Shown in pieces: positions 16,594 through 48,624 of a DNA stretch of 64,000 bases. Where the stretch lies: IMG/VR virus record IMGVR_UViG_3300042691_042003, positions 62,001 to 126,000 of that record; one strand, written 5' to 3'. The notes beneath the pieces are model-generated. The model ran no database searches, was not told the origin of the DNA, and saw nothing but the letters and a program-made list of their open reading frames with translations. The position numbers and the translations under genes were made by a program. Numbering within the stretch: position 1 is the stretch's first letter; every line of letters begins with the position of its first letter.

Positions 16594-16619
16594 GATAAAT
16601 ATAAAAAAATAAATTTTAA

Positions 16620-17015: not shown

Positions 17016-17033
17016 TTTCTACTTATATTACTT

Positions 17034-17513
17034 ATGCATTCAATAAAGAATAATAAACCTTCTAAGAAATCAGGATTTCAACAAGGTTATTTTCCTATAA
17101 ACGAATGTAAGAAATATCAAGGTAAAGGTCCTATAATTTATAGATCTTCTTGGGAGAAAAAATTTTGTTTATATTGTGAAAGGAATCCGGCGATCGTATC
17201 TTGGTCGTCGGAATCTTTCGTTATAAGGTATTTTAATCCTCTTGATAATAAATATCATAATTATTTCCCTGATTACGTTTTAAAATTAGAAAGCGGAGAA
17301 ATTTTTATAGTTGAAGTAAAACCTAAAGCTCAATTAATAAAACCGGATCCTCCAAAGAAAAAAACTCCTAAGGCTTTAAAGTCTTATAAATGGCTTTATG
17401 AAACTTGGGTTACAAATATGTGTAAAAAGGCTGCTGCCGAAGAATTTGCTAAAGAAAGAGGATGGAAGTTTCTTCTCGTAACTGAAGATTTTTTTAAAGT
17501 TAGATCAGAATAA
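17034..17513 (+). CDS. Head completion protein (gp4-like, TnsA-type nuclease fold)
   Basis: KYQG, YRSSWE, WSSE, YFPD, VEVKP, K..AA..F...GW.F...TE. Confidence 0.9.
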   Translation: MHSIKNNKPSKKSGFQQGYFPINECKKYQGKGPIIYRSSWEKKFCLYCERNPAIVSWSSESFVIRYFNPLDNKYHNYFPDYVLKLESGEIFIVEVKPKAQLIKPDPPKKKTPKALKSYKWLYETWVTNMCKKAAAEEFAKERGWKFLLVTEDFFKVRSE

Positions 17514-18259
17514 TGAAATTAATATCTAATTTTTTAGAATATATAATAGATCTTTTAAATCTTCAGCTTAGTACTTCTACTGAAGGAGAGAAAGAAGAAA
17601 TTATTACGGCAAAAAATGCTTATGAATGGTTTCTTAAAGAATCCGAAGATAAGAATAGTAAAAGAGTTGAAATAAATAAAGATCCTCTTTTATATCCTGG
17701 TAAAATTTATGTTTTTAAATATAATGCAAAATACAAAAACGTTTTAGATTATTGGGATAAACATCCAATAGTTCTAGTTTTAGGAAATTTACAAGGGGAA
17801 AAAGGGAAAATCGTTTTAGGTCTTAATATTAGTTGGTATCCTCCTGCAGCTAGAAAGTATATTGTTGAAACAATCAGGAAAATATATTCCTCAAAATATA
17901 AAGAGGCTATTATGAAAAAAAGTTATCAAGCTAATTCTCAAGCCCCTGTTTATTTAGATTTATACCAACTTAAAAATTTTTTAGATCAATATGGATTTTC
18001 TTTTGCTTTGAGATCTTATATTCCTGGTCAGATAATAGCTCCTAAATATTGTATATGCTATGAAGATTGGGACAAAGCAGTTTTACTAGATCAACCTAGG
18101 ATTTTCCCTGAATTAGAAGTTAATGATCCTTTTTATTCTCTAAGAAATATTTATGAAGAATTTAAGAATCATATAAAATATCAAAGAAATAATAAATCTG
18201 ATTTAAAAATAAAAAGAGACGAAGCAAAAGCTAAAGGAAAATATAAATTTACTAAGTAA
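17513..18259 (+). CDS. DNA end protector protein (gp2-like)
   Basis: PGKIYVFKYNAKYK..LDYWDKHP.VL, GLNISWYPP..R. Confidence 0.8.
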   Translation: MKLISNFLEYIIDLLNLQLSTSTEGEKEEIITAKNAYEWFLKESEDKNSKRVEINKDPLLYPGKIYVFKYNAKYKNVLDYWDKHPIVLVLGNLQGEKGKIVLGLNISWYPPAARKYIVETIRKIYSSKYKEAIMKKSYQANSQAPVYLDLYQLKNFLDQYGFSFALRSYIPGQIIAPKYCICYEDWDKAVLLDQPRIFPELEVNDPFYSLRNIYEEFKNHIKYQRNNKSDLKIKRDEAKAKGKYKFTK

Positions 18260-18297
18260 GTTTTTTATTCGAATATATAATATAATAATAGAAAAAT

Positions 18298-19911
18298 ATG
18301 GCCGGTTTTGTAAATCGAGACGAAACTTCACAAGGAGCACCGACTCCTGCTGCAAGAAATTTAGTCAGTAAAGCATTAAAATCTCTTTCATCATTTGGAA
18401 TGATGTATGATGATATGGTGCTTAAAAATTCTAAAGCTATTGGTATTAATGAAGATCGATATGGTTGGAGGATGGATCCTCGAAATGTTGCAGGAGGAGA
18501 ATATGACGATTATGCACTTTTTGCTAATCTTTCAATGACTGATATCAATCTTAGAAAATCGATTTCTATTTTTGATAAATCATATCCAAAGAAAAGAGAA
18601 GATTTAAGAAAATTCGCTATCCAAGATGAAATTGAAGAAATTCTAGATACCCTTTGTGATGAAGCAATTGTTTATGACGATAAAAATTATTTTTGTTTCC
18701 CTCTCGCTTTTGATGATGAAACTCTTGAACCTGGAACTCTTGAAGCAATAAAAATTGCTCTTGATACTAATTTTAAAAGAATTTATCAGTATTTTGGATT
18801 TAATAATGATATAGCTGGATGGTCTTATTTCCGTAAATGGTTAGTTGATGGTTATCTTGCTTTTGAAATTATCTACAATAAAGATCAAACAAGAATTATT
18901 GGATTTAAAGAACTTGATCCTATTTATCTTGAGCCGGGTCTCGATAAAGAAGGAAAGAAAATTTGGAAACAATTTAAAGGTCAACCTAACAAAGAAAGAC
19001 TTATTTATGATTCACAAGTAATTTATATTTCATATGCAAACGTAAATACTGTTAATCGAGTTTCTTATGTTGAAAGATTAATTCGTTCTTTTAACCTTTT
19101 AAGGATTATGGAACATTCTAGAGTTATTTGGGCAACTGTTAACTCTTCATTTAAGACTAAATTTGTTATTCCAGTTGGAGGAAAATCAAAAACTCGAGCT
19201 AAACAATCTCTTGGAGTTCTTATGCAGAATTACAGAGAACAAATTGATTTTGATACTGATTCAGGAGAACTAAAAGTTAATGGTAAACCAATGATGCCTT
19301 TCAATAAAGAATATTGGTTACCTTCCGGTGAAGCTGGAGAACCAACTATTGAAACAATCGGCAATGATGGACCTGATCTTTCAGATACTGAAGCTCTTAA
19401 ATATTTTAGAGAGAAGCTGATTAAGGTTTCTAAAATCCCCCTTTCAAGATTTGATATGGAATCTCCTCCTTCTTGGGAAATGAATGCTGAAGGGATGACT
19501 AGAGATGAAATTAAATTTGGTCGTTTTATTACTCGTCTTCGTTCTGTATTCCAAGAAATTCTAGTAAAACCTCTTTGGATTCAAATGTGTTTAGATTTCC
19601 CTGAATTGAAAGATGATGATGCGTTTAAAGCACAAATTGGAGTAAAATATCATAAATATAATATTTTTGAAGAAATGAAAGAAATTGAAATTCTTCAAAA
19701 AAGATTAGATTTTGTAACTTCAATGAAAGATGGCCTAGTTGAAACCGATGCAAATATGAATGAAATTAAATATTTTGCTTCTGAATTCTTAATACAAAGA
19801 TTCTTAGGTCTTACTCCGGATGATCTAAGAGTTAATAGAAAACTTAAAGAAATTGAAGATCGAGAAAAGATAGAATTAGCTAAAAAATCAGCTGAAGCTA
19901 CTGGAATATAA
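18298..19911 (+). CDS. Portal protein (gp20)
   Basis: WLVDG, ELDP, SYVER, EYWLP, SKIPLSR, TRDEIKFGRFITRLR. Confidence 0.95.
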   Translation: MAGFVNRDETSQGAPTPAARNLVSKALKSLSSFGMMYDDMVLKNSKAIGINEDRYGWRMDPRNVAGGEYDDYALFANLSMTDINLRKSISIFDKSYPKKREDLRKFAIQDEIEEILDTLCDEAIVYDDKNYFCFPLAFDDETLEPGTLEAIKIALDTNFKRIYQYFGFNNDIAGWSYFRKWLVDGYLAFEIIYNKDQTRIIGFKELDPIYLEPGLDKEGKKIWKQFKGQPNKERLIYDSQVIYISYANVNTVNRVSYVERLIRSFNLLRIMEHSRVIWATVNSSFKTKFVIPVGGKSKTRAKQSLGVLMQNYREQIDFDTDSGELKVNGKPMMPFNKEYWLPSGEAGEPTIETIGNDGPDLSDTEALKYFREKLIKVSKIPLSRFDMESPPSWEMNAEGMTRDEIKFGRFITRLRSVFQEILVKPLWIQMCLDFPELKDDDAFKAQIGVKYHKYNIFEEMKEIEILQKRLDFVTSMKDGLVETDANMNEIKYFASEFLIQRFLGLTPDDLRVNRKLKEIEDREKIELAKKSAEATGI

Positions 19912-19956
19912 TATTCTCAGTTAACCCTTGATATATATAAAAAAATAGAAGCCTAA

Positions 19957-21801
19957 ATGAGCAATTATTTACTTGTACTAGAAAGATCTGAAGGTAATCT
20001 TGCAGTTTCGAAAGAAGGCGATAAGTATGTCCTAGAAGGAATTTTTACTGAAATCGGAGTAAAGAATAAAAATAATAGAATTTACGACGAAAAAGAATTA
20101 CTTCCACATATTGAAGAGCTACAAACAAAATTAAAAGGAAATAAACTTCTTGGAGAACTAGATCATCCTAAATCTTTTGATATTTCTCTTAGAAATGCAT
20201 CACATGTAATAGAAGATATTAGCTATGATAAAGGGTCTAAGAAAGTTACTGGTAGAATTCGTTTACTTAATACGGATGCCGGTAAACAAGCTATGGCTCT
20301 TGTTGACGCTGGAGTTCCTCTTCATATTTCTAGTAGAGCTGCTGGTGTTGTTGAAGGTAATGGTCATGTAAAAATTAAGAAAATGTTTACTTATGATTTA
20401 GTTGCAGATCCTGGATTTGCTAACGCTGAATTAAAAAGAGTAAACGAATCTTTTGGATTTTCTGATGACGATTTAATTCAAATATTTGAAATTCCTAGCA
20501 CAATAGACGAATCATTTGTTGATGATAAATATACAAAACAAACAAAAAAAGAAGAAATGGATTCTAATCAATACATCAAGGTTGAGGATTTCAATGAATA
20601 TACCAAGCATTTAAAAGAAGAAATCGACGGATTGAAAAAATCTTTAACCGAATCTAAAAATTCAAACGATTCTGAAATCAATGAAGGTTTAGTTCGTTAT
20701 GCTGAAGAAACAGCAAAGAGAGTAAATCAAATCCAAGAATATGTTGGAAAACTTGCCGAATCGGTTGATGGTCTTATTTCACATAACGATTATATCGTTG
20801 AAAATCTAGAAAAAGTTAAAGATTATGCTGAAATGGTTGGAGAAAGATCTAATCAAGGTATTAATTATGCTGAGAAGCTTGCTGAATCGGTAGATCATCT
20901 TATCGAATATACCAAGATAATTGCTGAGAAAGCTGATCAAGGTATCGAATACACTAAGCATATTGCTGAAATGACAGATAATAATATCGAATACACAAAG
21001 CACGTTGCTTTAAAAGCTGATCAAGGTATCGAATACACTAAGTATATCGCTAATGAAAATTCTAATCGTTGGAATTATCAAACCTATATGAATGAGCAAC
21101 TTGATAATGTAATTTCTCATAACGATTATATCGTTGAAGGAACTTCTTCTATTATTGAATATACTGAATATCTCAAAGAACAAACCGAAAATCTTGCTAA
21201 TTACATGAACCATGTGGTTGAAAAGATTAATGAAGGATTTGTTCCTAATTCTTTTGAACCTAAAGATGATTTTGAAAAAGAAATTTCTGAAAAAATCGGA
21301 TCTATTTTAGAATCAGTTAAAGAAGAGGTTTCTTTTGAAAAGAAAGATAATAATTTGAATTTCTTAAATTTCCTTTCTGAAAGTAAAAGAAATCAATTCC
21401 ATTCTCTTAACGATGATATGAAAGAAAGAGTTATTTCTACATTTGAATCTAATAAATATTATGGTTCTGCTGATGCAGAAAAGCTTTTCGAATCTATCTT
21501 TATTATTCAAGCCCCTGTAATGAATTGGCTATCTAATATGCCTTCTAAATACAGAGAAGCATGGAACGGACTTAATGAATCTCAGAAAAATGCAATCAAA
21601 GCTCAAGCTTCTGTTAGAAATCTTGATACTCAATACAAAATTGACGATTTCTGGTCTACAAGAGATTTAAGAACTGTTAAAGTTGAAACTCCTCTTACTG
21701 AATCTAATGAAACAGTAATTGAAGAATCCCCTAAATATGTAACTCCTTCTACATATATGCAAACAGTTGAAGACGAATTAAGAAGGAGATTTAAAAGATA
21801 A
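19957..21801 (+). CDS. Prohead protease (gp21) fused to a scaffold/core domain
   Basis: LEGIF, NKNNRIY, GELDHP, ISSRAAG, YDLVADPGF in the first ~160 aa; then ~450 aa acidic coiled coil. Confidence 0.9.
   Translation: MSNYLLVLERSEGNLAVSKEGDKYVLEGIFTEIGVKNKNNRIYDEKELLPHIEELQTKLKGNKLLGELDHPKSFDISLRNASHVIEDISYDKGSKKVTGRIRLLNTDAGKQAMALVDAGVPLHISSRAAGVVEGNGHVKIKKMFTYDLVADPGFANAELKRVNESFGFSDDDLIQIFEIPSTIDESFVDDKYTKQTKKEEMDSNQYIKVEDFNEYTKHLKEEIDGLKKSLTESKNSNDSEINEGLVRYAEETAKRVNQIQEYVGKLAESVDGLISHNDYIVENLEKVKDYAEMVGERSNQGINYAEKLAESVDHLIEYTKIIAEKADQGIEYTKHIAEMTDNNIEYTKHVALKADQGIEYTKYIANENSNRWNYQTYMNEQLDNVISHNDYIVEGTSSIIEYTEYLKEQTENLANYMNHVVEKINEGFVPNSFEPKDDFEKEISEKIGSILESVKEEVSFEKKDNNLNFLNFLSESKRNQFHSLNDDMKERVISTFESNKYYGSADAEKLFESIFIIQAPVMNWLSNMPSKYREAWNGLNESQKNAIKAQASVRNLDTQYKIDDFWSTRDLRTVKVETPLTESNETVIEESPKYVTPSTYMQTVEDELRRRFKR
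20860..21060 (+). repeat. 42-bp (14-aa) period degenerate repeat in the scaffold domain
   Basis: ADQGIEYTKHIAEM / TDNNIEYTKHVALK / ADQGIEYTKYIANE; AGCTGATCAAGGTATCGAATACACTAAG at 20931 and 21015. Confidence 0.85.
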
Positions 21802-21894
21802 TCTAATCAAATAGATATATACTATAACGCAAAATCTGCTAAGACACAAAAAGCAAAAGGCGTAAATTAAAAACAAACAAAAATAAAATTAATT

Positions 21895-23529
21895 ATGTAT
21901 TTAATTAACGAACAAGAAGTTTTCGGTAAATGGGCTCCAATTATCGAATCAACTACCGGCATTCAGGATCGTTCTAAAGTTGAATGGATGTCTAAGTACT
22001 GTCATTATCATGAATTGTACGAAAATAATAACCTCGCTCAACTTGGTGCTGTAAATGGCATGGGAGCTACTCGTTTCCCTGGAGATCCAGGAACTCAAAG
22101 TCAGTTCTTCTCTCAAGAAACTGGTTCTGGTGATAAGGCTCACACTCTTCTTCCTCTTGCTATGCAAGTTGCAGCTCAGACTGTAGGTCTTGATCTAGTT
22201 CCTGTTGTACCTATGCCTGGTCCTATGGGTGTTCTTACCTATCTTGACTTCGTATATGGTGGTGGTAAAACTAATGGTACTGGTGCTAACATTCCTCTCC
22301 TTGTAAAAGTTGATGTAGGATCTACTGCTGCTCCTGGTGCTGCTGGAACTACTGGAGGTATTACTTATACTTATGTAGGACCTTCTCGTATTGACGGTAA
22401 TGCTATATTCCATATTACTGGTTCTCTTACTACTGGTACTATTCTTTCTAATATGTATGCTTCTGCTGGTTCTACTAACCTTAACAATGTTAAATATACT
22501 GGAGCTGTTACTAAGGTTGAATTAGTTAAAGCTCTCGAAGATCATATTACTGGTTTCTCTGGAGATTCTCTTCGTGCTGGAATTTATGCAGATACTGCTA
22601 ATAATGGTGTTAATGATCCTCTTTCTCGTTTTGATGGTGAAGGAACTCAAGATAACATCATGAACTTAAGCCTTTTCAACAAATCTGTTGAAGCTAAAAC
22701 TTTCCAAGTTGCTGCTGCTGTTACTCGTGAGCAAGTTCAGGATCTTAAGCAATTTGGAGTTGATGCTGTTTCTCAGGTTGAATCTGTTCTTATTAACGAA
22801 CTTACTCAATCTATCAACAAGAACATTCTTTCTAGAATCTTCGCTCTTGGTGAAAGAAACCACTCTCAAGTTATTTCTACTCAAGGTCTTAACTTCTTCT
22901 TGAACCTTGGTTCTATTCCTAGATTAGTATCTTATGCTTCTGTTACTAACGCTCCTTATACTGCTTTTGCTTCTTATCTTAGCAGCAATTACAGTAATTT
23001 AACAGGTGCTACAATGAACGCAACTGAAAATTCTTCTTCACCTGCTGAAAACCTTTCTACTCGTCAGCGTAAGATCATGTCTAAGATCCTTGCAATTGCT
23101 AACCTAATTGCTATCCGTGGTCGTCGTGGTCCTGCTACTTTCGTAGTAACTAACGGTCAAGTATGTTCTGCTCTTCAGGATGTAGCTGGTTTCGTACCTG
23201 CTCCTATGGCTAACACCATCAATCAGATGAGCGGTTCTCTTTACCCAATCGGTACCCTTGCTGGTCTTGCTATCTACAACGATCCTAACATGGCTTGGAA
23301 CGATACTCGTTTCTGTGTAGGTCGTAAAGGTGATGGTAATTCTCCAGGACTCGTATTTATGCCTTACTTGATGGCTGAATCTGTTCAGACTATCGCTGAA
23401 GGTACTATGGCTCCTAAGGTTGCTGTTAAGTCTCGTTATGCTCTCGTTGAAGCTGGTTTCCACCCACAAACCATGTATTTAACTTCCGGAGTTCATATCG
23501 ATTCTCTTATCGCTGGAGGTTTAGTATAA
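21895..23529 (+). CDS. Major capsid protein (gp23)
   Basis: KWAPIIE, VVPMPGP.G, EQVQDLK, LINE....IN, RRG...FVV, FMPY, P...VKSRYAL. Confidence 0.95.
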   Translation: MYLINEQEVFGKWAPIIESTTGIQDRSKVEWMSKYCHYHELYENNNLAQLGAVNGMGATRFPGDPGTQSQFFSQETGSGDKAHTLLPLAMQVAAQTVGLDLVPVVPMPGPMGVLTYLDFVYGGGKTNGTGANIPLLVKVDVGSTAAPGAAGTTGGITYTYVGPSRIDGNAIFHITGSLTTGTILSNMYASAGSTNLNNVKYTGAVTKVELVKALEDHITGFSGDSLRAGIYADTANNGVNDPLSRFDGEGTQDNIMNLSLFNKSVEAKTFQVAAAVTREQVQDLKQFGVDAVSQVESVLINELTQSINKNILSRIFALGERNHSQVISTQGLNFFLNLGSIPRLVSYASVTNAPYTAFASYLSSNYSNLTGATMNATENSSSPAENLSTRQRKIMSKILAIANLIAIRGRRGPATFVVTNGQVCSALQDVAGFVPAPMANTINQMSGSLYPIGTLAGLAIYNDPNMAWNDTRFCVGRKGDGNSPGLVFMPYLMAESVQTIAEGTMAPKVAVKSRYALVEAGFHPQTMYLTSGVHIDSLIAGGLV

Positions 23530-25285: not shown

Positions 25286-25766
25286 AATTCGTAGACAAAA
25301 TGCAGGCAAAACACCTACAAAATACGGAATAGTTACAAAAGGTCTAAAACCTAGATATAAAAAAGTTCTTAATGAAAATCCGGTTATTAAGAAATATTCG
25401 GATGATGATAGGTTCATACAGGCCATCTTCAGGATTGAAGATGAGAAGATAAGATTATCCCATTTACAAAGGCCGTTTGTTCACCCTGTGTCAAAAGAGA
25501 TATACACGTTTGAATGTATTAAAGACTCTTATAAAATATTTAATTGGGAATGTGCTTATTGTAAAATTCCAATACAATCGAGAATAGATAGATTTAGTCC
25601 TGATAATTTTACATGTGAAAAATGCTATAAGTACTATATTAAAGATTCTAAAAAAATAAATCAAAGAATTATTGAGTCTTCACTTTCTTTTACCGAAAAA
25701 TGTAAGAGGATGATGATAGATAATCAGAAATCATTCTTAAAATATCTAAAGAAAAATGAAAAATAG
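25278..25766 (+). CDS. Hypothetical zinc-finger protein
   Basis: CAYC...CEKC; basic. Confidence 0.6.
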   Translation: MVEIRRQNAGKTPTKYGIVTKGLKPRYKKVLNENPVIKKYSDDDRFIQAIFRIEDEKIRLSHLQRPFVHPVSKEIYTFECIKDSYKIFNWECAYCKIPIQSRIDRFSPDNFTCEKCYKYYIKDSKKINQRIIESSLSFTEKCKRMMIDNQKSFLKYLKKNEK

Positions 25767-27231
25767 GTTCGATTATTTTGATCAATTTGTTTTAAATGAA
25801 GCTAAGAAAAATAAAACCCCTAAGATTAAGGTTCTTATGCTCTCAAATATTAGTGAAGAATCTTATACTGTTCCTGCAGTTGAAGCCGAATGTAAAAAGA
25901 GGGGGATAGTTTTCCGTATTATCGATATTAACACTTGCTCTTTAATTAAAGATAAGAAAGGAGACGGTTATATTATAAATGATAAAACTAAGGTTCCTTT
26001 TAAAATAGATTCTGAAGACACAGCTATACTTACTAGAAGAGGAGTCGTTAGAAGTACTATGACGAGAGATCTTATTTCTCAATTAGAGGATGCCAATTTC
26101 TTTGTTGTTAATACTCTTGAATCTATTCTTGCTTGTGAGAATAAATTTGTCACTTCAAAAATTCTTATGAATGCTGGAATTCCAGTTCCTAAAATGGCAA
26201 TTGTTGATGGTGAAGAATCTATCGATTCAGCTCTAAAAGAAATAGGTGGTCAATTTCCTATAGTTCTTAAAATGCTTTCAGGATCTCATGGTATTGGAGT
26301 TTCTATTATTGAATCTCTCGCTTCTCTTAAATCGGTTTTACAAACTATGTGGAAAATCGATCCAAATATCGAAACTCTTATTCAAGAAAAAATTGATTCT
26401 GATTACGATCTAAGAATCCACGTTCTTACTAAAAGATTTAATTCTCCTTCTCCGGATGAAACCGATTCAGTTCTCCTTGGTTATATGAGACGTAATAGAG
26501 TTAAAAAAGATTTCAGAACTAATTATTCTCTTGGAGGAACGGTTGAAAAAACTAAGGTTACTCCTGAACAAGAAAAAATTGCGATTGAGGCTGCTAAAGC
26601 TGTAGGTTGTAATTGGTGCGGTGTTGATCTGATCGTTGATAAGAAAACGAAGAAAAATTATGTTCTTGAAGTTAATTCTTCTCCAGGAACACAAGGTTTG
26701 AAAAAAGCTACAGGAGTCGACGTAGTAAAAGATATAGTTGATTTTCTTTCGGATAAAAAGAATTGGATTAGATCTCGTAGAGTTATAGGTTTTAGAGAGG
26801 TAATAACAATTCCAGAAATAGGTGATGTTATTGCTAAATTTGATACTGGTAACGGAGCTATGTCTTGCTCATTAACTTACGATACTGCAGAATTAATTGA
26901 TGGAGATAAATTTATCGAATGGGAATTAGGAGGTAAAAAATTCAAAAGTAAAGTAGTAGGATTTTCTACTGCTGAAGTCGGTCCTAAAACACACGAAAGG
27001 CCTACTATTCTTATGGACATATCTTTTGCAGGTAAAACTTATAAAGATGTTGAAGTTTCTCTAGTAGACCGTAAAGAAAAATCTACTAAATTCTTAGTAA
27101 ATAGAAAATTCATGGAAAGAATAGGATGTTCTGTTTCTCCTTATAAAACATTTATGATTACTTCTTTTGATGGAGAATATTCAGCAAGAGATGCAAAAGG
27201 AGATCCACATGCAGGAATAAAATTTATATAA
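25756..27231 (+). CDS. rimK: RimK-family ATP-grasp ligase fused to a C-terminal retropepsin-like (RimB-type) protease, with capsid-targeting-like leader
   Basis: GIPVPK, FPIVLK, GSHGIGV, IQEKI, DLRIHV, FRTNYSLGG, GVDL, LEVNSSPG; then IGFRE...AKFDTGNG...RP....LVDR...LVNR. Confidence 0.88.
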   Translation: MKNRFDYFDQFVLNEAKKNKTPKIKVLMLSNISEESYTVPAVEAECKKRGIVFRIIDINTCSLIKDKKGDGYIINDKTKVPFKIDSEDTAILTRRGVVRSTMTRDLISQLEDANFFVVNTLESILACENKFVTSKILMNAGIPVPKMAIVDGEESIDSALKEIGGQFPIVLKMLSGSHGIGVSIIESLASLKSVLQTMWKIDPNIETLIQEKIDSDYDLRIHVLTKRFNSPSPDETDSVLLGYMRRNRVKKDFRTNYSLGGTVEKTKVTPEQEKIAIEAAKAVGCNWCGVDLIVDKKTKKNYVLEVNSSPGTQGLKKATGVDVVKDIVDFLSDKKNWIRSRRVIGFREVITIPEIGDVIAKFDTGNGAMSCSLTYDTAELIDGDKFIEWELGGKKFKSKVVGFSTAEVGPKTHERPTILMDISFAGKTYKDVEVSLVDRKEKSTKFLVNRKFMERIGCSVSPYKTFMITSFDGEYSARDAKGDPHAGIKFI

Positions 27232-27233: not shown

Positions 27234-27485
27234 ATGAAAAAGCTAAAAAATATTCAATCAATTGAAGAATATTTAGGAGAAGCAGCAGGTTCTCCTAATA
27301 CAGAAAATTATATGTTTTTTGAAAATCTAAAAACTATAAAACAAAGTATAGAAGAACTTATGACCCTTGATCCTATTATGGTAGATCAAATTCTTCAAGA
27401 TGGTCATGATTGGGCAGAAGATCATATTGCAACTGCTAAGGAATCAATCGATCAGGTTACTCACTTTTTTATGAACAAAAAATAA
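27234..27485 (+). CDS. Small helical protein with leader-like N-terminus (IQSIEEYLGE)
   Basis: 83 aa; GHDWAEDHIATAKE. Confidence 0.65.
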   Translation: MKKLKNIQSIEEYLGEAAGSPNTENYMFFENLKTIKQSIEELMTLDPIMVDQILQDGHDWAEDHIATAKESIDQVTHFFMNKK

Positions 27486-27493: not shown

Positions 27494-27802
27494 TTATCGA
27501 CCTTTTTTCATTTTTATAATCATTAGAATTGATAGAAGAATCGAAGTGCTCATAAATCCATATGCAATGAATTTTGGAATTTGTGAATGAAATTCATGAA
27601 GCATCCAAAATATATTCATAAAAATCCAAGAAGTAACGGTTAAATTTTCTAATCTATTTTCTTTCTCGGTCCATAACATATAAAGAGAGAAAAAGATTGT
27701 TGGAACCGTCATTATTTTTGCAAGGAGAGATAATTGAAGGCACCATAATGAATCTTTAATTACCCAAGAAATAATATGCAGCTTATTAGAAATTTCTTTC
27801 AT
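27494..27802 (-). CDS. Small membrane protein
   Basis: Three to four hydrophobic segments; start overlaps the speD stop. Confidence 0.7.
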   Translation of the reverse strand: MKEISNKLHIISWVIKDSLWCLQLSLLAKIMTVPTIFFSLYMLWTEKENRLENLTVTSWIFMNIFWMLHEFHSQIPKFIAYGFMSTSILLSILMIIKMKKGR

Positions 27803-28227
27803 TAGTATTCAGAATTATTATAGCTGCTATGATCTCTTTCAATAGTTTCAGATCCATTAGACACTACATGTAAACCTTTATTTCGATCGATCATCATCCA
27901 ATCATAACTAACAAGTTCCATCATATCTAAATGATCTATAACTGTTTGAAGTTCATATTTTTTACATGAATAAATATCAAATTGTAACATAGGAACTTCT
28001 AAAGCATCCCATATATGAATTGAAGCATGAGATGTTGCTAAGGTAACAGTTCCAGTGATTCCTTCATTACCTTCTTCATCAACATAAACCGATGTAGGTC
28101 CAGCAACTACGACCATTCCAACTTTTTCTACTAAATCTCTAAACCATTTATTTAAGATTTCTTCTGATTTAATAGGTTTTTTACAAAAAGCTTTTACCAA
28201 CAAATGTTGATGATAGGGTATGAACAT
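27802..28227 (-). CDS. speD: Pyruvoyl-dependent S-adenosylmethionine decarboxylase family proenzyme
   Basis: HQHLLV, GITG...LATSHASIHIW (self-cleavage serine), FDIYSCK. Confidence 0.88.
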   Translation of the reverse strand: MFIPYHQHLLVKAFCKKPIKSEEILNKWFRDLVEKVGMVVVAGPTSVYVDEEGNEGITGTVTLATSHASIHIWDALEVPMLQFDIYSCKKYELQTVIDHLDMMELVSYDWMMIDRNKGLHVVSNGSETIERDHSSYNNSEY

Positions 28228-28258: not shown

Positions 28259-28313
28259 TGTTAATAAAAAATGTAAAAAAATTTTTTTATTTAGAGATTT
28301 TTTATTATATTTG
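28259..28313 (+). promoter_or_regulatory. Host-type early promoter
   Basis: TGTTAATAA 28259; TATATTTG (TAnnTTTG) 28306-28313. Confidence 0.72.
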
Positions 28314-28334
28314 TATAAATCAAATTAGTAAAAT

Positions 28335-28989: not shown

Positions 28990-29943
28990 ATGAATCCTAA
29001 AAAAGCACTTTGGACTGAAAGATATCGTCCTACTGATCTTGATGAACTTATAGTTCCTCAACGAGTTTACAATAAACTAAAAAATGGTGTTTATCAGAAT
29101 CTACTTCTTTATGGTGGTCCTGGTTCAGGTAAAACTTCTTCGGCTAAAATTCTAGCTAAAGATCATCCATCAATGTATATCAATTGTTCTTCTGAAACCG
29201 GTGTTGATACGGTAAGAACTAAAATTACAGAATTTTGTTCTTCTCTTTCTGTTATCGATGGTGAACGTAAACTTAAAGTTGTAATTCTTGATGAATTTGA
29301 TGGTGTTTCCGATGCTTATATGAAAGCACTACGTGGAACTATCGAACAATTTGAAAAAACTGCTCGTTTCGTAGCTACATGTAATTATTTTAATAAGATT
29401 CCAGATAATATTCAATCTCGTTTCGAATGTATTAATTTCGATTTCACTGAAGAAGAAGAAAAAGAAATCGAAGTAAAATACTTCAAACGAATCTATGAAA
29501 TCGTTAAAAACGAAGGAATGGAAATCGAAAAAGATGCTCTCGTTGAATTAGTTCGACGTAAATTTCCTGATCTTCGTTCTACAATTAATGTTCTTCAAGG
29601 ATACTTTGCCGAAGGAAAACTGAAAATTACTTCTGAAGATGTTAAAAAATTCCATGGTGTCTTTAAAGATCTTTATGAACATATTTTTAATCCTTCAAAC
29701 GACGAAGTAAAGAATTATCAATATCTCGTTTCAAATTATTCTTCTAAAGTCGAAGATGTTATTCAATCTTTAGGAACTGATTTTATCGAATATATTCAAA
29801 TGGAAAGACCTCAGCTTATGCGTAAAGTAGGTGAAATCTGTTACGAAGTAAACAAACATTCATTCGAATTACGTTTTGTAGTTGATCCTGTGATTACTAT
29901 GCTGTCTCTCGTTTATCGAATTCAAACAATCATCAGAAGCTAA
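28990..29943 (+). CDS. Clamp loader ATPase subunit (gp44 / RFC family)
   Basis: LWTERYRP, GGPGSGKTS, ILDEFD, ALRG.IE, TCN, IQSRF, FPDLR. Confidence 0.94.
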   Translation: MNPKKALWTERYRPTDLDELIVPQRVYNKLKNGVYQNLLLYGGPGSGKTSSAKILAKDHPSMYINCSSETGVDTVRTKITEFCSSLSVIDGERKLKVVILDEFDGVSDAYMKALRGTIEQFEKTARFVATCNYFNKIPDNIQSRFECINFDFTEEEEKEIEVKYFKRIYEIVKNEGMEIEKDALVELVRRKFPDLRSTINVLQGYFAEGKLKITSEDVKKFHGVFKDLYEHIFNPSNDEVKNYQYLVSNYSSKVEDVIQSLGTDFIEYIQMERPQLMRKVGEICYEVNKHSFELRFVVDPVITMLSLVYRIQTIIRS

Positions 29944-29952
29944 GTTATCGAA

Positions 29953-29960
29953 GATAAATA
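29953..29960 (+). promoter_or_regulatory. Candidate late promoter driving the internal-protein array
   Basis: GATAAATA 16 nt before the ATG at 29977. Confidence 0.55.
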
Positions 29961-29976
29961 ATAAAAAAGTTTTCGC

Positions 29977-30231
29977 ATGAAAAATTTCCCTTCTTATGAA
30001 GAATTCTTAAATGAAGGAAATTGGTCTCAAATGATGAAAGGTGTAAGAACTGGTTCGGTCCCTTACACTATTGTTGCTATCGATAGAGTAGCTAAAAAAG
30101 TCGTAGGCCAAGAAATCGTTAGTATTCGTGATGCAGTTCCTGCTTATTACGAAGATATGAAACGTAGATTCTCTAAGTTTCATTTACATATTGAAGATTC
30201 TACTGGAAAGGTAGTTTGGTCAGAAAAATAA
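29977..30231 (+). CDS. Leader-tagged putative internal protein 1 (MKNFPSYEEFLNE)
   Basis: Shared leader. Confidence 0.7.
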   Translation: MKNFPSYEEFLNEGNWSQMMKGVRTGSVPYTIVAIDRVAKKVVGQEIVSIRDAVPAYYEDMKRRFSKFHLHIEDSTGKVVWSEK

Positions 30232-30239
30232 AATCAGAA

Positions 30240-30617
30240 ATGAACACACATATTAAATCATTTAATGAATTCCTTAATGAAAGTGTAAATGATCCTGTTC
30301 TCGTTGCTTTACGTGCTGCTAAAGAAGATCGTAAAAAGATGATGATGGATAAGAAAGAAAGAATGAAAAGGCGAGTTTACGGTGCAAAACGTGAACAAAT
30401 GGAAGCTGAGCTAGATAAAATCTGGCAAGAAATTAAGGATAATAAGCAGCAACAATCTGATCTTTGGAGAGAAATGGAAGCCGAGGCCGGTGATAAGAGC
30501 CCAAACTTTTCAGATGCAGATGGCAACCGTTATGGTCAAAAATTCAACGATCTTGATGATGAATTAGAAAAGCTTTATCGTCGTCGTTCTGAATTAGAAA
30601 CAAAATTAGCATATTAA
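30240..30617 (+). CDS. Leader-tagged putative internal protein 2 (MNTHIKSFNEFLNE), coiled coil
   Basis: ATG 30240 preferred over TTG 30216; shared leader. Confidence 0.7.
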   Translation: MNTHIKSFNEFLNESVNDPVLVALRAAKEDRKKMMMDKKERMKRRVYGAKREQMEAELDKIWQEIKDNKQQQSDLWREMEAEAGDKSPNFSDADGNRYGQKFNDLDDELEKLYRRRSELETKLAY

Positions 30618-30618
30618 G

Positions 30619-30870
30619 ATGAATCATATTCCTTCATTTGAAGAATTTTTAAACGAAAGTTCTCATTATAAAATTGACGATTTCCAAGTTGGAGATGTTA
30701 TTCACTTTAAAGATGGTGAAGCTTGGAAAGTTGTTAAAGTTAATAATATAAGAGATTTAATCTCAGTATTTCCTCATAATAAGTTAGCAAAAGATAAAAA
30801 CGTTAGCATAACGATAGAATTAAGACTTAAATATCTTAATGATAACGTAACAAAAATTGAAAAGTCTTAA
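30619..30870 (+). CDS. Leader-tagged putative internal protein 3 (MNHIPSFEEFLNE), SH3-like body
   Basis: Shared leader; FQVGDVIHF..G..WKVV. Confidence 0.7.
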   Translation: MNHIPSFEEFLNESSHYKIDDFQVGDVIHFKDGEAWKVVKVNNIRDLISVFPHNKLAKDKNVSITIELRLKYLNDNVTKIEKS

Positions 30871-30871
30871 T

Positions 30872-31699
30872 ATGAAAAATATCCCTTCTTTTGAAGAATT
30901 CGTAAACGAAAGTTTGAACGAATCTCTTAGCTTAACTCTTAGGGATGTTCCTAAAATCGTTAAGGATTTCGTTTCGAGGACTAAATATATCAAAAATCTT
31001 AAAGAAAAAGATTGGTTAACTGCATCGGAAATTATCATAGTAACTGATAAAGATTTTGATATAAAAGGTAAATCAACAACTGGCAATTATATGTTGCTAG
31101 GACTTTATAAAACTTATGGACCTGTTTATAAAGTTGAATGGGCATCCGTAAGACCTGATATGAAATATCCTGCTAATGCTGGAATCTATAATAAAGAGAT
31201 TGATAAAGCCACATGGGAAAAACTAAAAAATGCCCATGAAAGAAAAATGATCGATCCAAAAAGTCTTACGGCTAATGATATTAAAAACACAGGAGATCTT
31301 TTAGGTAAATTCATAACCGATGAAATTAATACATCTTCGGTTCCTGTTAAAGGTCAATTTGATCCAACAAATTCAGGATCAATTAAAATGGAAATTGAAA
31401 GTGCTTATAAAGATTCAGAAGTTAGTATCGTTAGAGGAGATAATGTAAGAGTAGATTTCTACTTTAAACGTGCTGGTGATGGCCGTAATGTTGCTAAAAC
31501 TAATCTATTCTTTATCATAGATCCTTCTCAACAATCGGTAGAATTTAAAAATCCTGATGTTAGTGGTCTTAGTAGAGCAAACTACAGAAATATGAGAGAT
31601 ATTTCAGCATTCTTTAAGAGTTCTATTCAAGCTTGGAAGGATGAAGATAAGAGAAGATCAGATGCTATGCAACAAACAGCATTTAGTCAAGATAGATAA
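30872..31699 (+). CDS. Leader-tagged putative internal protein 4 (MKNIPSFEEFVNESLNE)
   Basis: ATG 30872 preferred over TTG 30857; shared leader. Confidence 0.7.
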   Translation: MKNIPSFEEFVNESLNESLSLTLRDVPKIVKDFVSRTKYIKNLKEKDWLTASEIIIVTDKDFDIKGKSTTGNYMLLGLYKTYGPVYKVEWASVRPDMKYPANAGIYNKEIDKATWEKLKNAHERKMIDPKSLTANDIKNTGDLLGKFITDEINTSSVPVKGQFDPTNSGSIKMEIESAYKDSEVSIVRGDNVRVDFYFKRAGDGRNVAKTNLFFIIDPSQQSVEFKNPDVSGLSRANYRNMRDISAFFKSSIQAWKDEDKRRSDAMQQTAFSQDR

Positions 31700-31714
31700 A
31701 AAAATAAAACAATA

Positions 31715-32014
31715 ATGAATAATCATATTCCATCATTTGATGAATTTTTAAATGAAAGTTCTCTTCAAGGAACTCCTAAATTTCTTCCAGGTAAAGCTGC
31801 TATTGCTTATGGTGATGAAGAAGGTAAAATCGTAGCTGCTGAATTTGCTAAAGATTGGAAGAAACTTAAGAAATACGACGAAACCGGTTGGTTAGATCCT
31901 ACTGAAATGAAAAACATGGGAATCGAACCTACAGATATTCTCGTAGCCTTCAAAGATTCTGAAGGAGGAATTAATGTATACACTTACGGTGAAGGAGGTG
32001 TAGAGCTAAAATAA
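31715..32014 (+). CDS. Leader-tagged putative internal protein 5 (MNNHIPSFDEFLNE)
   Basis: Shared leader. Confidence 0.7.
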   Translation: MNNHIPSFDEFLNESSLQGTPKFLPGKAAIAYGDEEGKIVAAEFAKDWKKLKKYDETGWLDPTEMKNMGIEPTDILVAFKDSEGGINVYTYGEGGVELK

Positions 32015-32025
32015 AAAATTAAAAA

Positions 32026-32583
32026 GTGAAACATATACAATCGTTCGACGAATTCATTAATGAATCAGAAGATCAGAATCTTCCTCTTAATGAAAATAAT
32101 TTAGTTTATATTAAAGATAAGAAATTTAAATCTTCACAAGATATTATGAATTTCTTTCAGAAAAATGCAGGTTCCGCTTTTGAAAAATTTATTTCTGATA
32201 AAATGGGAGTGAAAGCTAAAGCTGTAACTGGAGTTTCCAGAAGAGGTGATGCTGTTAATATTTCTACACAACCAATTTCTAAAAAAGATTTAGGAATTTT
32301 TGGATTTGTTTTTAGTGAAGTATCTATCGATTCTTTTGGTGGAGGTATAATTGAACATCAAATGGTAAATAATATGCAATTTGAATTTTGTCCTGCTATC
32401 TTCTTTAGATTACATGTTAGTTATAAACATATAGGAGGTGGTTCTAACGGTGCCGATATTGTACTTCCTAGTAATGATCCTTACAATACTCTTATTATGT
32501 ACGATATCGTAGAAAATCGTTTTCTAGATCAGGCCGAAGCTAAAGCTTCTAAAACTAAATATTGGGTCGAAGGATCTTGGTAA
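32026..32583 (+). CDS. Leader-tagged putative internal protein 6 (MKHIQSFDEFINE)
   Basis: GTG start; shared leader; second LNE/N site. Confidence 0.7.
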   Translation: MKHIQSFDEFINESEDQNLPLNENNLVYIKDKKFKSSQDIMNFFQKNAGSAFEKFISDKMGVKAKAVTGVSRRGDAVNISTQPISKKDLGIFGFVFSEVSIDSFGGGIIEHQMVNNMQFEFCPAIFFRLHVSYKHIGGGSNGADIVLPSNDPYNTLIMYDIVENRFLDQAEAKASKTKYWVEGSW

Positions 32584-32599
32584 AAATAAAATTTAAATA

Positions 32600-33427
32600 G
32601 TGAAACATATAAAATCATTTGACGAATTTTTAAACGAAGGTCTTAACGAGGCTAATATCTCATTCTATAAAAATGTAGTTCAGCAAGCTATTAAAGATGC
32701 TTTAGGGCATGATGTAAAACAATCTGATGTTAAAGTAGGAGCAAAAAAGCAAAGTGGAGGATATGATTTGATTACTCTTAATGGAAAACTTCTTTGCTCT
32801 TCTTCTCAACACGATGAAATGCTTCGTTCTGCAACTAATGCAATTAAAGAAGATCCTGCTAAGTATGGTTTGAAAGAATCTGCAATGAACGAAGCAATGA
32901 CTTTCGATGATGCTGTAAAGCAATTTACTGCAAATCCTTATGGAATTGGTGCTAGTCGAGTTCATGTTGTAGGAGATGAAGAACATCATGTTAAAGGTCA
33001 TAGAATTCTTAAATTCTTTCATTCAACTGCTTTCGATAGAGATAAAACTATGGCTAAACTAAAAACTCTAGGTTTTAGCGCAAAGAACATGACAAAGAAC
33101 ATGACCGATAAAGGATATATGTTCAGATATTATATAAGCCTTTTTGAAGGAGCAGTAAATGAAGATTCTATTGATGAAGCTGCTAAATGGCCTCTAACCG
33201 ATAAAATTGACAGTAAAACTTTTTATGATATGTGGGCTTCTTTAGATGTTGCTACTCAAAATCTCAGTGATTATATGGATGAAGCAAATAAAGGAAAAGA
33301 AAGTGATGCTCTATTCTCTTTGAAAGTTGCTTATGATGAGCTAACTGATTTAATGAAAAGTAAGACAATCGAAAAGCAGCTAAAAGCTATTGCAGAAGAG
33401 CTAAAAGATAAAAATGCACTTAAATAA
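32600..33427 (+). CDS. Leader-tagged putative internal polyprotein 7 (MKHIKSFDEFLNEGLNE)
   Basis: GTG start; shared leader; clustered internal sites LKE/SAMNE/A and LFE/GAVNE/DSIDE/A. Confidence 0.7.
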   Translation: MKHIKSFDEFLNEGLNEANISFYKNVVQQAIKDALGHDVKQSDVKVGAKKQSGGYDLITLNGKLLCSSSQHDEMLRSATNAIKEDPAKYGLKESAMNEAMTFDDAVKQFTANPYGIGASRVHVVGDEEHHVKGHRILKFFHSTAFDRDKTMAKLKTLGFSAKNMTKNMTDKGYMFRYYISLFEGAVNEDSIDEAAKWPLTDKIDSKTFYDMWASLDVATQNLSDYMDEANKGKESDALFSLKVAYDELTDLMKSKTIEKQLKAIAEELKDKNALK

Positions 33428-33429
33428 TT

Positions 33430-33669
33430 ATGAAGAATATTCCCTCTTTCGAAGAATTCTTAAATGAAGCTGCAAGAGTCGATACATTTCCTTACAAAGC
33501 TTCACATTCTAAAGATCCTAAAGGTTTTGGACTTTGGTATTTTAGTTTCAGTAAAGATGGTTCCGATTCCTTTTCCCCTGAAAAATCTATGAGTTACGGA
33601 GATGCTTTGAAATGGGCACAAGCTCAAGCAAAAGAAAAGAAACAATCTGTTATTTATGTAATGGGATAA
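33430..33669 (+). CDS. Leader-tagged putative internal protein 8 (MKNIPSFEEFLNE)
   Basis: Shared leader. Confidence 0.7.
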   Translation: MKNIPSFEEFLNEAARVDTFPYKASHSKDPKGFGLWYFSFSKDGSDSFSPEKSMSYGDALKWAQAQAKEKKQSVIYVMG

Positions 33670-33682
33670 AAAAATTTAAAAT

Positions 33683-33738
33683 TGTTAATAATTTTTTGGC
33701 TCGGCATTTTTTTATGTCGAGCTTTTTTATTATATTTG
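33683..33738 (+). promoter_or_regulatory. Host-type early promoter
   Basis: TGTTAATAA 33683; TATATTTG 33731-33738. Confidence 0.72.
33699..33728 (+). terminator. Rho-independent terminator ending the array, embedded in the promoter
   Basis: GCTCGGCAT...ATGTCGAGC stem followed by TTTTTT. Confidence 0.75.
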
Positions 33739-33783
33739 TACTATACTCATTTAAAAAGCATATAATTAAAAAATCATTGTATA

Positions 33784-35037
33784 ATGACTGGTAAGTACAC
33801 ATTAATCTTCGACGGTAACTTTTGGTTACACAAAACCTATTTTATAGGTCAAAAAATCAAGCAAGGCAAACCCTTCAATTTCATCGACGAACCGGATCAA
33901 GATAAAAATCTTCTTCTTTGGAAACTCTCTGTCGACTTCGCTGCTGAAATCAAACGCTTCGAAGGAATCACTAATCGAATTGTTTATACAGTCGATTCTT
34001 CTTCTTGGCGAAAAACATTTCATCCTGAATCCGAATATAAAGCTAATCGAGTAAAATCTTCGGAAATCAATTGGTCTCTTATTTACGATGTCCATAACGA
34101 ATTTATCCAATCTCTTGAAAAGATGGGCATCATTATTTCTCGTGTTCGAAATGCCGAAGCCGACGATCTTATCTTTGCTTGGTCTTCTCATCTAAATCAA
34201 CAAGGACAAAATGCACTTATTATCTCAGGTGATAACGATCTTCTACAACTCGTAAATCACGATAAATCTTCAGGTGCAAACACTCTTTATTACAATAAAT
34301 TCGATAAAGATCTACACGTTTTCTCGGGTTTTCAAAATTGGCTCGATATCGAAGAAATCACTAACGATATCTTCAATCTTCCCGTCGATCTCGTTTCTAA
34401 TACAAAAACTCATCTTCGTCAAATTATTAAAACCAATAAAATGAAAATCGACGAAGTCAATACAAACGAATTTATTTTTAAGAAAATTCTTCTAGGTGAT
34501 TCAGGCGATAACGTTTCTCCTCTTCATGTTACTATTAAAGAAACAAAATCAGGTCCTAAACGATTTGCCGTAACAGAAAATCATTCTAATCTAATTCTTA
34601 ATGAATTTAAAACCGATAAGGTTTTCGTAAATCAATCTCATCTATTCAACGAAGAATACATCAATCAAATCTGCGAAATTGCTAAGCGAGTAATTAAAAT
34701 CGAAAAGCCTATCGAAGAAATTCGTACTAAATGGGAACTTAATCGTAATCTTGTCTTTCTTCATAAAAAATGTATTCCTGAATCAGTTCTTACTTCAATG
34801 TTCGAACAAATCGAAGGATGTAATTTAACTCATTTTTCTGCTCTTGAATTACATAATCTTATGAATAAGGACGAAATTCTTAAAGGAACCACTTACGTAA
34901 AAGAAAAAGTCGATTCTTTTAATGAATCAGGAATTTTTAAATCTTCTATGAAGAAAGAATCTCCAATTGAAAATGTAAAAATAGTCGAAAAACAAAGTGG
35001 ATTCGATGATTCATTTTGGAAAGACCTCTTAAAATAA
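33784..35037 (+). CDS. rnh: 5'-3' exonuclease / T4 RNase H (FEN family)
   Basis: LIFDGN, SWRK, YKANR, EADD, SGDNDLLQL, GDSGDNV. Confidence 0.9.
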   Translation: MTGKYTLIFDGNFWLHKTYFIGQKIKQGKPFNFIDEPDQDKNLLLWKLSVDFAAEIKRFEGITNRIVYTVDSSSWRKTFHPESEYKANRVKSSEINWSLIYDVHNEFIQSLEKMGIIISRVRNAEADDLIFAWSSHLNQQGQNALIISGDNDLLQLVNHDKSSGANTLYYNKFDKDLHVFSGFQNWLDIEEITNDIFNLPVDLVSNTKTHLRQIIKTNKMKIDEVNTNEFIFKKILLGDSGDNVSPLHVTIKETKSGPKRFAVTENHSNLILNEFKTDKVFVNQSHLFNEEYINQICEIAKRVIKIEKPIEEIRTKWELNRNLVFLHKKCIPESVLTSMFEQIEGCNLTHFSALELHNLMNKDEILKGTTYVKEKVDSFNESGIFKSSMKKESPIENVKIVEKQSGFDDSFWKDLLK

Positions 35038-48594: not shown

Positions 48595-48624
48595 TTTTTC
48601 TTTGCGAAATTTTTATTATATTTG
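48595..48624 (+). promoter_or_regulatory. Host-type promoter upstream of guaC (no TGTTAATAA element)
   Basis: TTTTATTATATTTGTA with TATATTTG at 48617-48624. Confidence 0.62.

Follow-up and report, generated by a model that had tools for sequence, protein, structure and literature searches.

A tandem array of eight unrelated phage proteins that share a leader resembling the T4 capsid-targeting sequence

That phages can carry a hypervariable set of internal proteins marked by a common leader has been known in principle since the 1990s, and T4 Alt, an ADP-ribosyltransferase with N- and C-terminal propeptides, is itself packaged and injected. The internal proteins (Ip or IP proteins) of the T-even phages have only their leader in common and are encoded at two hypervariable loci, with more than 30 variants described (PMC2839356, PMC12373910, PMC3012670), and each of the three in T4, Ip1, Ip2 and Ip3, is an inhibitor of a different GmrSD type IV restriction enzyme (PMC12373910; bioRxiv 10.1101/2022.04.14.488369). 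The first 10 residues of T4 IPIII are enough for packaging, and within this capsid-targeting sequence (CTS) residues 4 and 7 are the main determinants of targeting, whereas processing depends on residues 8 and 10 (PMC9026906). Here we describe a tandem array of eight genes, c1 to c8, in the IMG/VR virus record IMGVR_UViG_3300042691_042003, a 246-kb contig of an uncultured, T4-like jumbo phage from which a 64-kb piece (hereafter ‘the window’) was analysed; each of the eight begins with a leader that resembles the T4 CTS and continues into a body unrelated to the others. We consider it probable that this leader is a T4-type CTS and that the array encodes a cassette-like set of packaged and injected cargo proteins.

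The array extends from position 29977 to position 33669 and comprises eight adjacent plus-strand open reading frames (ORFs) with intergenic gaps of 1–16 nt. All eight start with a leader of 13–14 residues that fits the consensus M(K/N)x(I/F)x-S-(F/Y)-x-E-F-(L/I/V)-N-E, and the residue following its NE is, from c1 to c8, G, S, S, S, S, S, G and A. The first gene, c1 (29977–30231; 84 residues), has the leader MKNFPSYEEFLNE ahead of G and a mature part of 71 residues with a pI of 9.6. It is followed by c2 (30240–30617; 125 residues; leader MNTHIKSFNEFLNE, then S), whose body is charged and looks like a coiled coil and which has tagged homologs in two of the loci fetched for comparison (numbered with the prefix L; L073 and L119 are identical to the phage's own sequence), namely L144 (49% identity) and L169 (53%). 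A small, beta-rich body is encoded by c3 (30619–30870; 83 residues; leader MNHIPSFEEFLNE, then S), with a tagged homolog in L169 (48% identity). The leader of c4 (30872–31699; 275 residues), MKNIPSFEEFVNE ahead of S, is followed by a second LNE that again precedes S; eleven metagenome homologs are 49–88% identical to this protein, and the leader is kept in all ten that are full-length (the eleventh is a fragment), with its middle E replaced in several. The product of c5 (31715–32014; 99 residues; leader MNNHIPSFDEFLNE, then S) has a tagged homolog in L169 as well, at 77% identity. Both c6 (32026–32583; 185 residues) and c7 (32600–33427; 275 residues) start with GTG, at 32026 and 32600; the former carries MKHIQSFDEFINE ahead of S and a second LNE, ahead of N, at residues 21–23, while the latter is a mosaic of leader, module A, junction and module B that is described below. 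The array ends with c8 (33430–33669; 79 residues; leader MKNIPSFEEFLNE, then A; pI 9.3). The actual starts of two ORFs that had been listed with TTG are the internal ATGs at 30240 and 30872.

The shared leader cannot be attributed to chance. A degenerate DNA pattern for its core matched nine times in the window, always on the plus strand, against 0.00 expected from 100 shuffles, and a six-frame scan with a position-specific scoring matrix (PSSM) gave 12 matches of 16.6–27.8 bits over noise of at most 12.9 bits, all of them N-terminal and 5–6 residues past the start codon. The first-pass annotation of this DNA had described eight consecutive ORFs with a common leader and with bodies that diverge behind it; position, strand and leader were all borne out, and so was the divergence, as an all-against-all BLASTP comparison of the mature bodies found no pair below E = 0.01 (the best, c4/c5, being at E = 0.01). 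A tandem layout with a common start region would also be left by eight paralogs whose bodies had diverged past recognition, with the N-terminus as their sole conserved domain. Against such an origin stand the range of lengths (79–275 residues), the lack of any pairwise similarity, the differing architectures predicted for c4 and c7, and the occurrence of the same bodies in other orders and fusions in relatives, where they behave as independent modules; we give it a next to negligible probability.

The annotation had also pointed to similarity of the leader at the DNA level, and the string that it quoted is found at 30631–30660; identity between leader regions is 64–80% over 66 nt, with the A-rich upstream region included. 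Such identity, together with a mosaic breakpoint that falls on xNE codons (see below), is what would be seen if the repeat worked as nucleic acid, as a translation-initiation or regulatory RNA element or as a recombination site, and the peptide were incidental. The leader codons nevertheless differ at synonymous positions (TTT/TTC, AAT/AAC, TCT/TCA/TCG), and because these positions are free to change whereas the amino acids stay constant, selection acts on the leader peptide; the peptide motif is moreover retained across lineages that have only 22–40% identity in their core proteins. The conserved unit is thus the peptide and not the DNA, and a purely nucleic-acid function is hardly credible, although the leader could serve as a recombination joint as well, without any conflict with a targeting function.

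We compared the leader with T4 by scanning the first 135 kb of NC_000866 with a regular expression derived from the window leaders. The expression matched ipII and ipIII (MKT-YQEFIAE, followed by A) at the same N-terminal offset, as well as gp61.1; the N-terminus of ipI reads MKTFKEF. The four positions mapped in the T4 CTS correspond here to F/Y, F, L/I/V and E, and all are conserved in the leaders of the window. They are also conserved, or nearly so, among 172 unique leaders collected from the fetched loci (F/Y in 171, F in 160, L/I/V in 170 and E in 169), which have a modal length of 13 residues (range 10–17) and in 78% of cases S, A, G or N at the P1' position. A graded series connects these leaders with that of T4: the T-even-like contig L032, with gp5 and gp6 74–77% identical to T4, has MKTYQEFINE ahead of S and MKSFKEFINE ahead of A; loci with gp20, gp21 or gp41 40–47% identical to T4 have MKSFKEF(I/V)NE; and the 13-residue leader is found in more distant loci. 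The DNA pattern matches 118 IMG/VR stretches, 55 of which have a T4 core gene within 15 kb or less. N-terminal enrichment of a loose regular expression was only about six-fold over the fetched loci, which had been picked by the pattern and in which ORF starts were over-extended; the PSSM scan of the window is the one clean measure of N-terminal position.

Three side observations came from the same scans. The hypothetical T4 protein gp61.1 (54 residues; NC_000866, 18966–19130) starts with MKTFKEFIKE followed by D, a perfect fit to an IP-type CTS in which the first seven residues are those of ipI, and judging by this N-terminus gp61.1 could be an unrecognised T4 internal protein. The motif occurs internally, as ..AASVT(E/G)-SYDEFINEA.. 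with about 224 residues behind it, in unrelated viral contigs (L004, L011, L018, L026, L031, L054, L072, L104 and L108), most of which also have a ribonucleotide-reductase-like ORF; it may mark a targeting or cleavage site inside the protein, or be a coincidence. ORFs similar to giant-virus RNA polymerase subunit 2 (L022, L061 and L081) are chance matches to the pattern.

In AlphaFold2 (AF2) models of c4 and c7 the leader is disordered save for a helix of one turn. If helical, it would bring F-x-x-F-L together as a hydrophobic face on a segment that is otherwise acidic, which could plausibly act as a short motif for docking. Members of the c4 and c7 families have, behind the leader, a second (L/I/V/M)NE ahead of A or S. 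Some of them have lost the first Glu but keep the aromatic residues together with a (V/M)NE ahead of A a few residues downstream; targeting and cleavage thereby appear to be separable.

The array has much in common with T4 IPI, IPII and IPIII (Mullaney & Black 1996, reviewed in PMC9026906 and PMC3012670): an N-terminal (S/T)(F/Y)xEF(I/L/V)xE with a gp21-type site and then a small residue, unrelated mature bodies, genes outside the head cluster, and a gp21-family protease encoded in the same genome. The leader differs from the 10 residues of T4 ipII and ipIII in being 13–14 residues long, with 3–4 extra residues between Met-Lys and the core, and in having Asn at P2 nearly always. A placement among replication genes rather than in the head module, which the first-pass annotation had singled out, is real but not unusual, as the T4 ip loci also lie outside.

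The gp21-type prohead protease is encoded at 19957–21801 on the plus strand, 8 kb upstream of the array. Its protease part, at residues ∼10–160, is fused to a scaffold-like C-terminal half. The ORF matches Pfam Peptidase_S77 with 46.6 bits (cut-off 27) and the T4 gp21 structure (PDB 5JBL) with E = 2e-5; it is 32% identical to T4 gp21, and its segments GELDHP and ISSRA align to GELNHP and VSSRG of T4, the catalytic His and Ser segments. The C-terminal half, with repeated ..IEYTK(H/Y)IAE.. units and many (L/I/V)xE sites (34 in the whole ORF), looks like a self-destroying scaffold; the counterpart gene in Tenacibaculum phage PTm1, ORF-300, is annotated as a scaffold–protease fusion. The protease gene stands between those of a gp20-like portal protein (18298–19911, plus strand; phrog_213, E = 1e-71; T4 gp20, E = 1e-26) and a gp23-like major capsid protein (MCP; 21895–23529, plus strand; phrog_138; weak but significant BLASTP match to T4 gp23), and a further ORF at 12470–14029, with 26 (L/I/V)xE sites, has a scaffold-like look.

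These genes belong to a T4-like core set in the window (GC content 30%), which also includes ribonucleotide reductase, DNA polymerase, UvsX, the gp41 helicase, gp46/47, gp4, gp2, the gp44 clamp loader, an RNase H-like exonuclease, the large terminase, the tail sheath and topoisomerase II. The products of this set have only 22–40% identity with their T4 counterparts. The match of the DNA polymerase ORF (3236–4432, plus strand) to the profile of family B phage polymerases is confined to the C-terminal half of that profile (positions 498–838 of 856), and the polymerase may be split into two genes.

The array lies in the interval between the gp44-type clamp-loader gene on its left (28990–29943, plus strand; phrog_168, E = 9e-68; 29% identical to T4 gp44) and the RNase H or 5'-3' exonuclease-like gene on its right (33784–35037, plus strand; phrog_107, with PF02739 found on the gene of relatives). 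Taking the clamp loader as an anchor, we followed this slot through 43 loci, comprising the phage's own contig (L119) and 42 relatives (L120–L161) that are 40–86% identical. The slot holds eight tagged genes in the window, six in L169 and from none to two in the 42 anchored relatives: it is empty in L144 and L145, where the clamp loader and RNase H genes are ∼70 nt apart, has one or two tagged genes in L120, L121, L128, L130, L131 and L143, and contains only untagged, unrelated ORFs in L122–L127, L129, L142 and L155. None of c1, c3, c4, c5, c7 and c8 is present in any of the 42 anchored relatives. The six tagged genes of L169 run c5-like, c7-like, c2-like, new, c3-like, new, in place of the order c1 to c8 of the window, and in a closer relative of 226 kb (c4 88% identical) the slot counts 15 genes, as read from its gene table alone. 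Tagged genes also gather in other slots, for example after a 613-residue gene at 37869. The slot is thus a general hyperplastic region that is not reserved for tagged cargo. Among its other contents are ∼12 untagged ORFs in L127–L131 and L143 (positions ∼11000–18000), some of which resemble, by their N-termini alone, SmpB, a nucleotidyltransferase of the CCA-adding or poly(A)-polymerase type and a TROVE/Ro-like protein.

Exchange of parts is visible within single genes as well. In c7 the leader is followed by module A (residues ∼14–93), a junction reading ..KESAMNE ahead of A (∼32876–32896) and module B (residues ∼101–275). Module B occurs as a stand-alone protein with its own leader in P0017, P0015, P0018 and P0024, and in P0029 and P0030 module A and a junction of the form ..KES(A/V)xNE, again ahead of A, are joined to the body of c6 (residues 24–185 of c6 are 72% identical to residues 102–262 of P0029, E = 1e-88). 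The DNA of the fusion gene in L168 matches c7 over nucleotides 2–299 and c6 over nucleotides 301–798, so that the switch of partner falls at the AAT GAA codon pair. Residues 94–97 of the c7 junction have a predicted local distance difference test (pLDDT) score below 50 in the AF2 model, as would be expected of a protease-accessible linker. Variation in content, the shuffled order and the mosaic c7 agree with the cassette-like organization that had been proposed for the array; the invariance among relatives that would have spoken against it was not seen.

In these respects the slot is like the hypervariable Ip loci of T-even phages (Repoila et al. 1994 and Comeau et al. 2007, cited in PMC2839356; PMC12373910), where relatives likewise carry different leader-tagged ORFs with fast turnover and a boundary of stem-loop and promoter. 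It is unlike them in the length of its arrays (eight genes here, and as many as 15 in that of one relative), in its position between gp44 and RNase H, in the re-ordering of cassettes and their in-frame fusion at xNE and in the untagged ORFs that occupy it in relatives.

The leader had been presented as a feature of the array. All eight genes of the array do carry it, but a motif scan extended beyond them found at least six more tagged genes in the window, at 11653, 14861, 15775, 16620, 25756 and 27234, and five in L020, another stretch of the same contig, where four stand in tandem; the genome thus has at least 19 tagged genes, at least 14 of them in the window. The six further carriers, all on the plus strand, flank the block of gp4, gp2, portal, protease and MCP genes (17034–23529) and are on both sides no more than 6 kb away from portal, protease and MCP. 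The first, h1 (11653–12441; 262 residues; leader MGLIKSYDEFINE, then N), is conserved across the clade, with 142 protein clusters and the leader present in 116 of 120 among the clusters listed, the other four being fragments. A gene at 14861–15778 (305 residues; leader MKNILTFENFINE, then S; PSSM score 16.6 bits) is followed by h2 (15775–16593; ∼272 residues; leader M(M)KNLKTYEEFLNE, then S), which is conserved and stands beside the portal gene in relatives, and by h3 (16620–17015; 131 residues; leader MKNLLSFEEYINE, then N), which has GATAAATA 18 nt upstream. On the other side of the block, a RimK-type ATP-grasp enzyme (25756–27231; 491 residues; PF08443, 121.8 bits) has a leader-like N-terminal extension, MKNRFDYFDQFVLNE ahead of A, with the RimK N-domain beginning only at residue 25; its orthologs in relatives have the canonical leader MMNLKYFSDFVNE, followed by A. 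The small gene next to it (27234–27485; 83 residues) starts with ..NIQSIEEYLGE ahead of A and has orthologs with canonical leaders in L124 and L126 (MEHLPTFSEFVNE and ..YSFDEYVNE). Two other ORFs, at 14387 and 24188, can be counted as carriers only with doubt.

A tag on an ATP-grasp enzyme, and an array placed between replication genes, are what would be found if the leader had a purpose outside capsid assembly, for example docking on a different phage complex, degradation or export. The leader nonetheless has the experimentally defined motif of the T4 CTS, cleavage residues included, it has no hydrophobic signal-peptide character, and most of its carriers cluster around the head module; we hold a capsid-unrelated tag to be highly unlikely. 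As a packaged enzyme with a targeting propeptide, the tagged ATP-grasp protein would be the parallel of T4 Alt, from which it differs in enzyme class and in its leader, which fits the IP-type motif that the Alt leader (MELITELFDE) misses. An S-adenosylmethionine decarboxylase gene (27802–28227, minus strand; PF02675, 47 bits) lies 0.6 kb from the ATP-grasp gene, and the pair is conserved in relatives. The tagged ATP-grasp protein could be a packaged enzyme, or could point to a link with polyamine or peptide-ligation chemistry in the head.

Among the tagged head-flanking genes lies a 118-residue ORF (14031–14387, plus strand) that is 62–84% identical in most of the relatives that have it. It has a sub-threshold match to Sigma70_r2 (20.5 bits; cut-off 24) and may be a gp55-like late sigma factor.

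The distribution of the leader suggests two classes of carrier, namely conserved head-core components beside the head genes and fast-turning-over accessory cargo in hyperplastic slots. The view of the tag as the universal address of an arsenal of injected effectors needs to be narrowed accordingly: because conserved head-flanking genes and the ATP-grasp enzyme are tagged too, it fits only part of the tagged set.

This raises the question of what the array proteins do. Searches of Pfam and PHROGs with the eight cargo proteins gave nothing above threshold, and sequence searches of the PDB with c2, c3 and c6 gave nothing significant. Foldseek searches with the AF2 models, against PDB and BFVD for c4 (pLDDT 78, residues 1–20 disordered) and against PDB for c7 (pLDDT 71), gave nothing at E ≤ 0.001. 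Of the body types named in the first-pass annotation, the coiled coil is consistent with the look of c2, whereas SH3-like folds appeared only as weak, sub-threshold Tudor/SH3-like Pfam matches of c3. The lack of resemblance between the array bodies and known anti-defence proteins (Pfam, PHROGs, Foldseek) would also fit a set of internal structural, scaffold or DNA-condensing parts that are loaded into the prohead and then degraded or retained, not injected. T4 gp67, gp68 and gp22 are core proteins of this kind that are cut by gp21 (PMC5694885), and h1, h2 and h3 are clade-wide and adjoin the portal, protease and MCP genes. The array members, by contrast, are rare, c4 having 12 clusters and c7 29 where h1 has 142, and they are missing from most close relatives and shuffled, which is the pattern of accessory genes in an arms race, and we regard a purely structural role for the tagged proteins as unlikely. 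By analogy with T4, an anti-defence or take-over role of the array members is the most likely one.

The signals that bound the array were examined in the window. The late-type motif that had been noted ahead of it, GATAAATA, is present at 29953, where the promoter-like motif GATAAATAA (29953–29961, plus strand) stands 16 nt before c1 and is a member of a GATAWATAA set. There are eight GATAWATAA sites in the window, all on the plus strand, and seven of them (10497, 11624, 23584, 29953, 42980, 46389 and 53827) are intergenic and 20–30 nt upstream of gene starts, at 10518, 11653 (h1), 23613, 29977 (the array), 43008 (tail sheath), 46423 and 53849; ahead of the portal and protease genes there are ATATATAA variants. 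The motif ahead of the array fits this phage-specific element common to structural genes, a candidate late promoter unlike the T4 box TATAAATA. A late promoter of the T4 type was rejected: NATAAATA occurs 23 times on the plus strand and 22 times on the minus strand, often within genes, and the T4 late box TATAAATA is not enriched.

At the other end, a terminator-like hairpin with a T-run (33698–33723, plus strand) closes the array and is the only such site between 28400 and 34000, in keeping with the single terminator that had been described. Directly behind it and ahead of the RNase H-like gene is an early-type promoter-like box, TTATTATATTTGTA (33727–33740, plus strand), of which the window has four exact copies (28302–28315, 33727–33740, 48613–48626 and 62170–62183) against 0.41 expected, at least three of them behind a T run and ahead of a gene start. 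This box, probably an early promoter class served by the host polymerase, contains TAnnTTTG, which we take to be the −7 promoter element of Bacteroidota; since start codons also have no Shine-Dalgarno sequence upstream, the host is likely a Bacteroidota bacterium. The layout of hairpin and then early box recalls the stem-loop and promoter cassettes of T4-type hyperplastic regions (PMC2839356).

The mechanism that we propose for a CTS-tagged, cassette-like cargo runs as follows. The eight genes would be transcribed together with structural genes, from the GATAWATAA-type site to the terminator at 33698. The short, acidic, amphipathic leader would dock through its aromatic face, F/Y-x-x-F-L/I/V, on a presumed scaffolding core of the prohead and, once the shell has closed, the gp21-type serine protease (19957–21801) would cut behind (L/I/V)-N-E and ahead of the small residue, with an extra cut in several cargos at a second xNE some residues further on or at an internal junction. 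The freed bodies would remain beside the DNA inside the head and pass into the host along with it. The rare, fast-turning-over members of the array would then most likely have an anti-defence or take-over function after injection, by analogy with T4 Ip1–3, and the conserved tagged genes by the head module are more likely to be core or assembly components. In the hyperplastic gp44/RNase H slot, in-frame modules would be gained, lost, re-ordered and fused, with their joints at the leader or at xNE.

Several observations weigh against this interpretation. An alignment with T4 gp23 shows no (L/I/V)xE in the MCP where T4 has its maturation site, and BLASTP found no homolog of the T4 gp22 scaffold in the window. 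Judged by capsid protein, the closest phages are an uncultured 462-kb phage (LR756500.1; 55%), the Lak megaphages (40%) and Tenacibaculum phages (33–37%), and no such leader was found within 20 kb of the capsid genes in LR756500.1, Lak-A2 or Tenacibaculum phage PTm1 (MCP 37–55% identical); it follows that the tag is not universal among phages with a related capsid. A tblastn search with h1 and h2 against GenBank phages gave no match, leaving the phage without a cultured relative, and a megablast search with positions 29000–35000 against GenBank phages also gave none. T4 internal proteins are described as basic, and the mature bodies are basic in only four of the eight. The GATAWATAA motif is short and A/T-rich and its total count is not above chance, its signal being one of position and strand, so that the assignment as a late promoter is only suggestive. 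The ATP-grasp carrier could mean that the tag is used more widely.

Among phages beyond the T-evens, the proposed cargo is closest to the inner-body proteins of phiKZ, 201phi2-1 and SPN3US, in which many head-internal proteins are cut after Glu by a gp21-related protease and N-terminal propeptides are thought to direct incorporation (PMC5694885). Those propeptides are mostly longer than 100 residues and have an (S/A/G)-x-E motif, with no short universal tag and no tandem arrays (PMC5694885), whereas here the leader has 13 residues and P3 is L/I/V. Judged by sequence, the locus has the leader, the unrelated mature bodies, the protease and the hypervariable content by which the T4 internal-protein system is recognized, in agreement with the CTS that had been proposed for it (same motif and N-terminal position as in ipII and ipIII, the four mapped positions kept, and the protease gene nearby), and the kind of system is one already known. 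Against the three IPs and Alt of T4, there are at least 14 tagged genes in 64 kb and five more in L020, in a phage that is known here from sequence alone, shares only ∼22–34% identity with T4 in its core proteins and has a probable Bacteroidota host. What is new relative to the T4 IPs is the evolutionary distance, a leader longer by 3–4 residues, the scale (arrays of eight, at least 19 tagged genes), the double cleavage motifs, the in-frame fusion at xNE and the tagged ATP-grasp enzyme.

If the proposed reading of leader and array is true, a 13-residue motif identifies head-packaged and host-injected proteins straight from metagenomic sequence, in a lineage with no cultured member, and provides a catalogue of candidate anti-defence and take-over proteins: the fetched loci hold 172 distinct tagged proteins, almost none with a recognizable family or fold. 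If the tag works as in T4, the capsid-targeting signal would be ancient and conserved far beyond the T-even coliphages. In the c7 and c6 fusions, modules can be seen to have been shuffled in frame at presumed sites of the protease. More tentatively, and with doubts that outweigh our confidence, we suggest that the leader/xNE motif may be doubly used, as an address-and-cleavage signal and as an in-frame joint for module exchange, in an integron-like system in which polyproteins such as c7 would be cut by the head protease and hundreds of orphan bodies would form an anti-defence reservoir against Bacteroidota immunity. Were that double role real, virion-delivered proteins would be predictable from sequence across the T4 superfamily.

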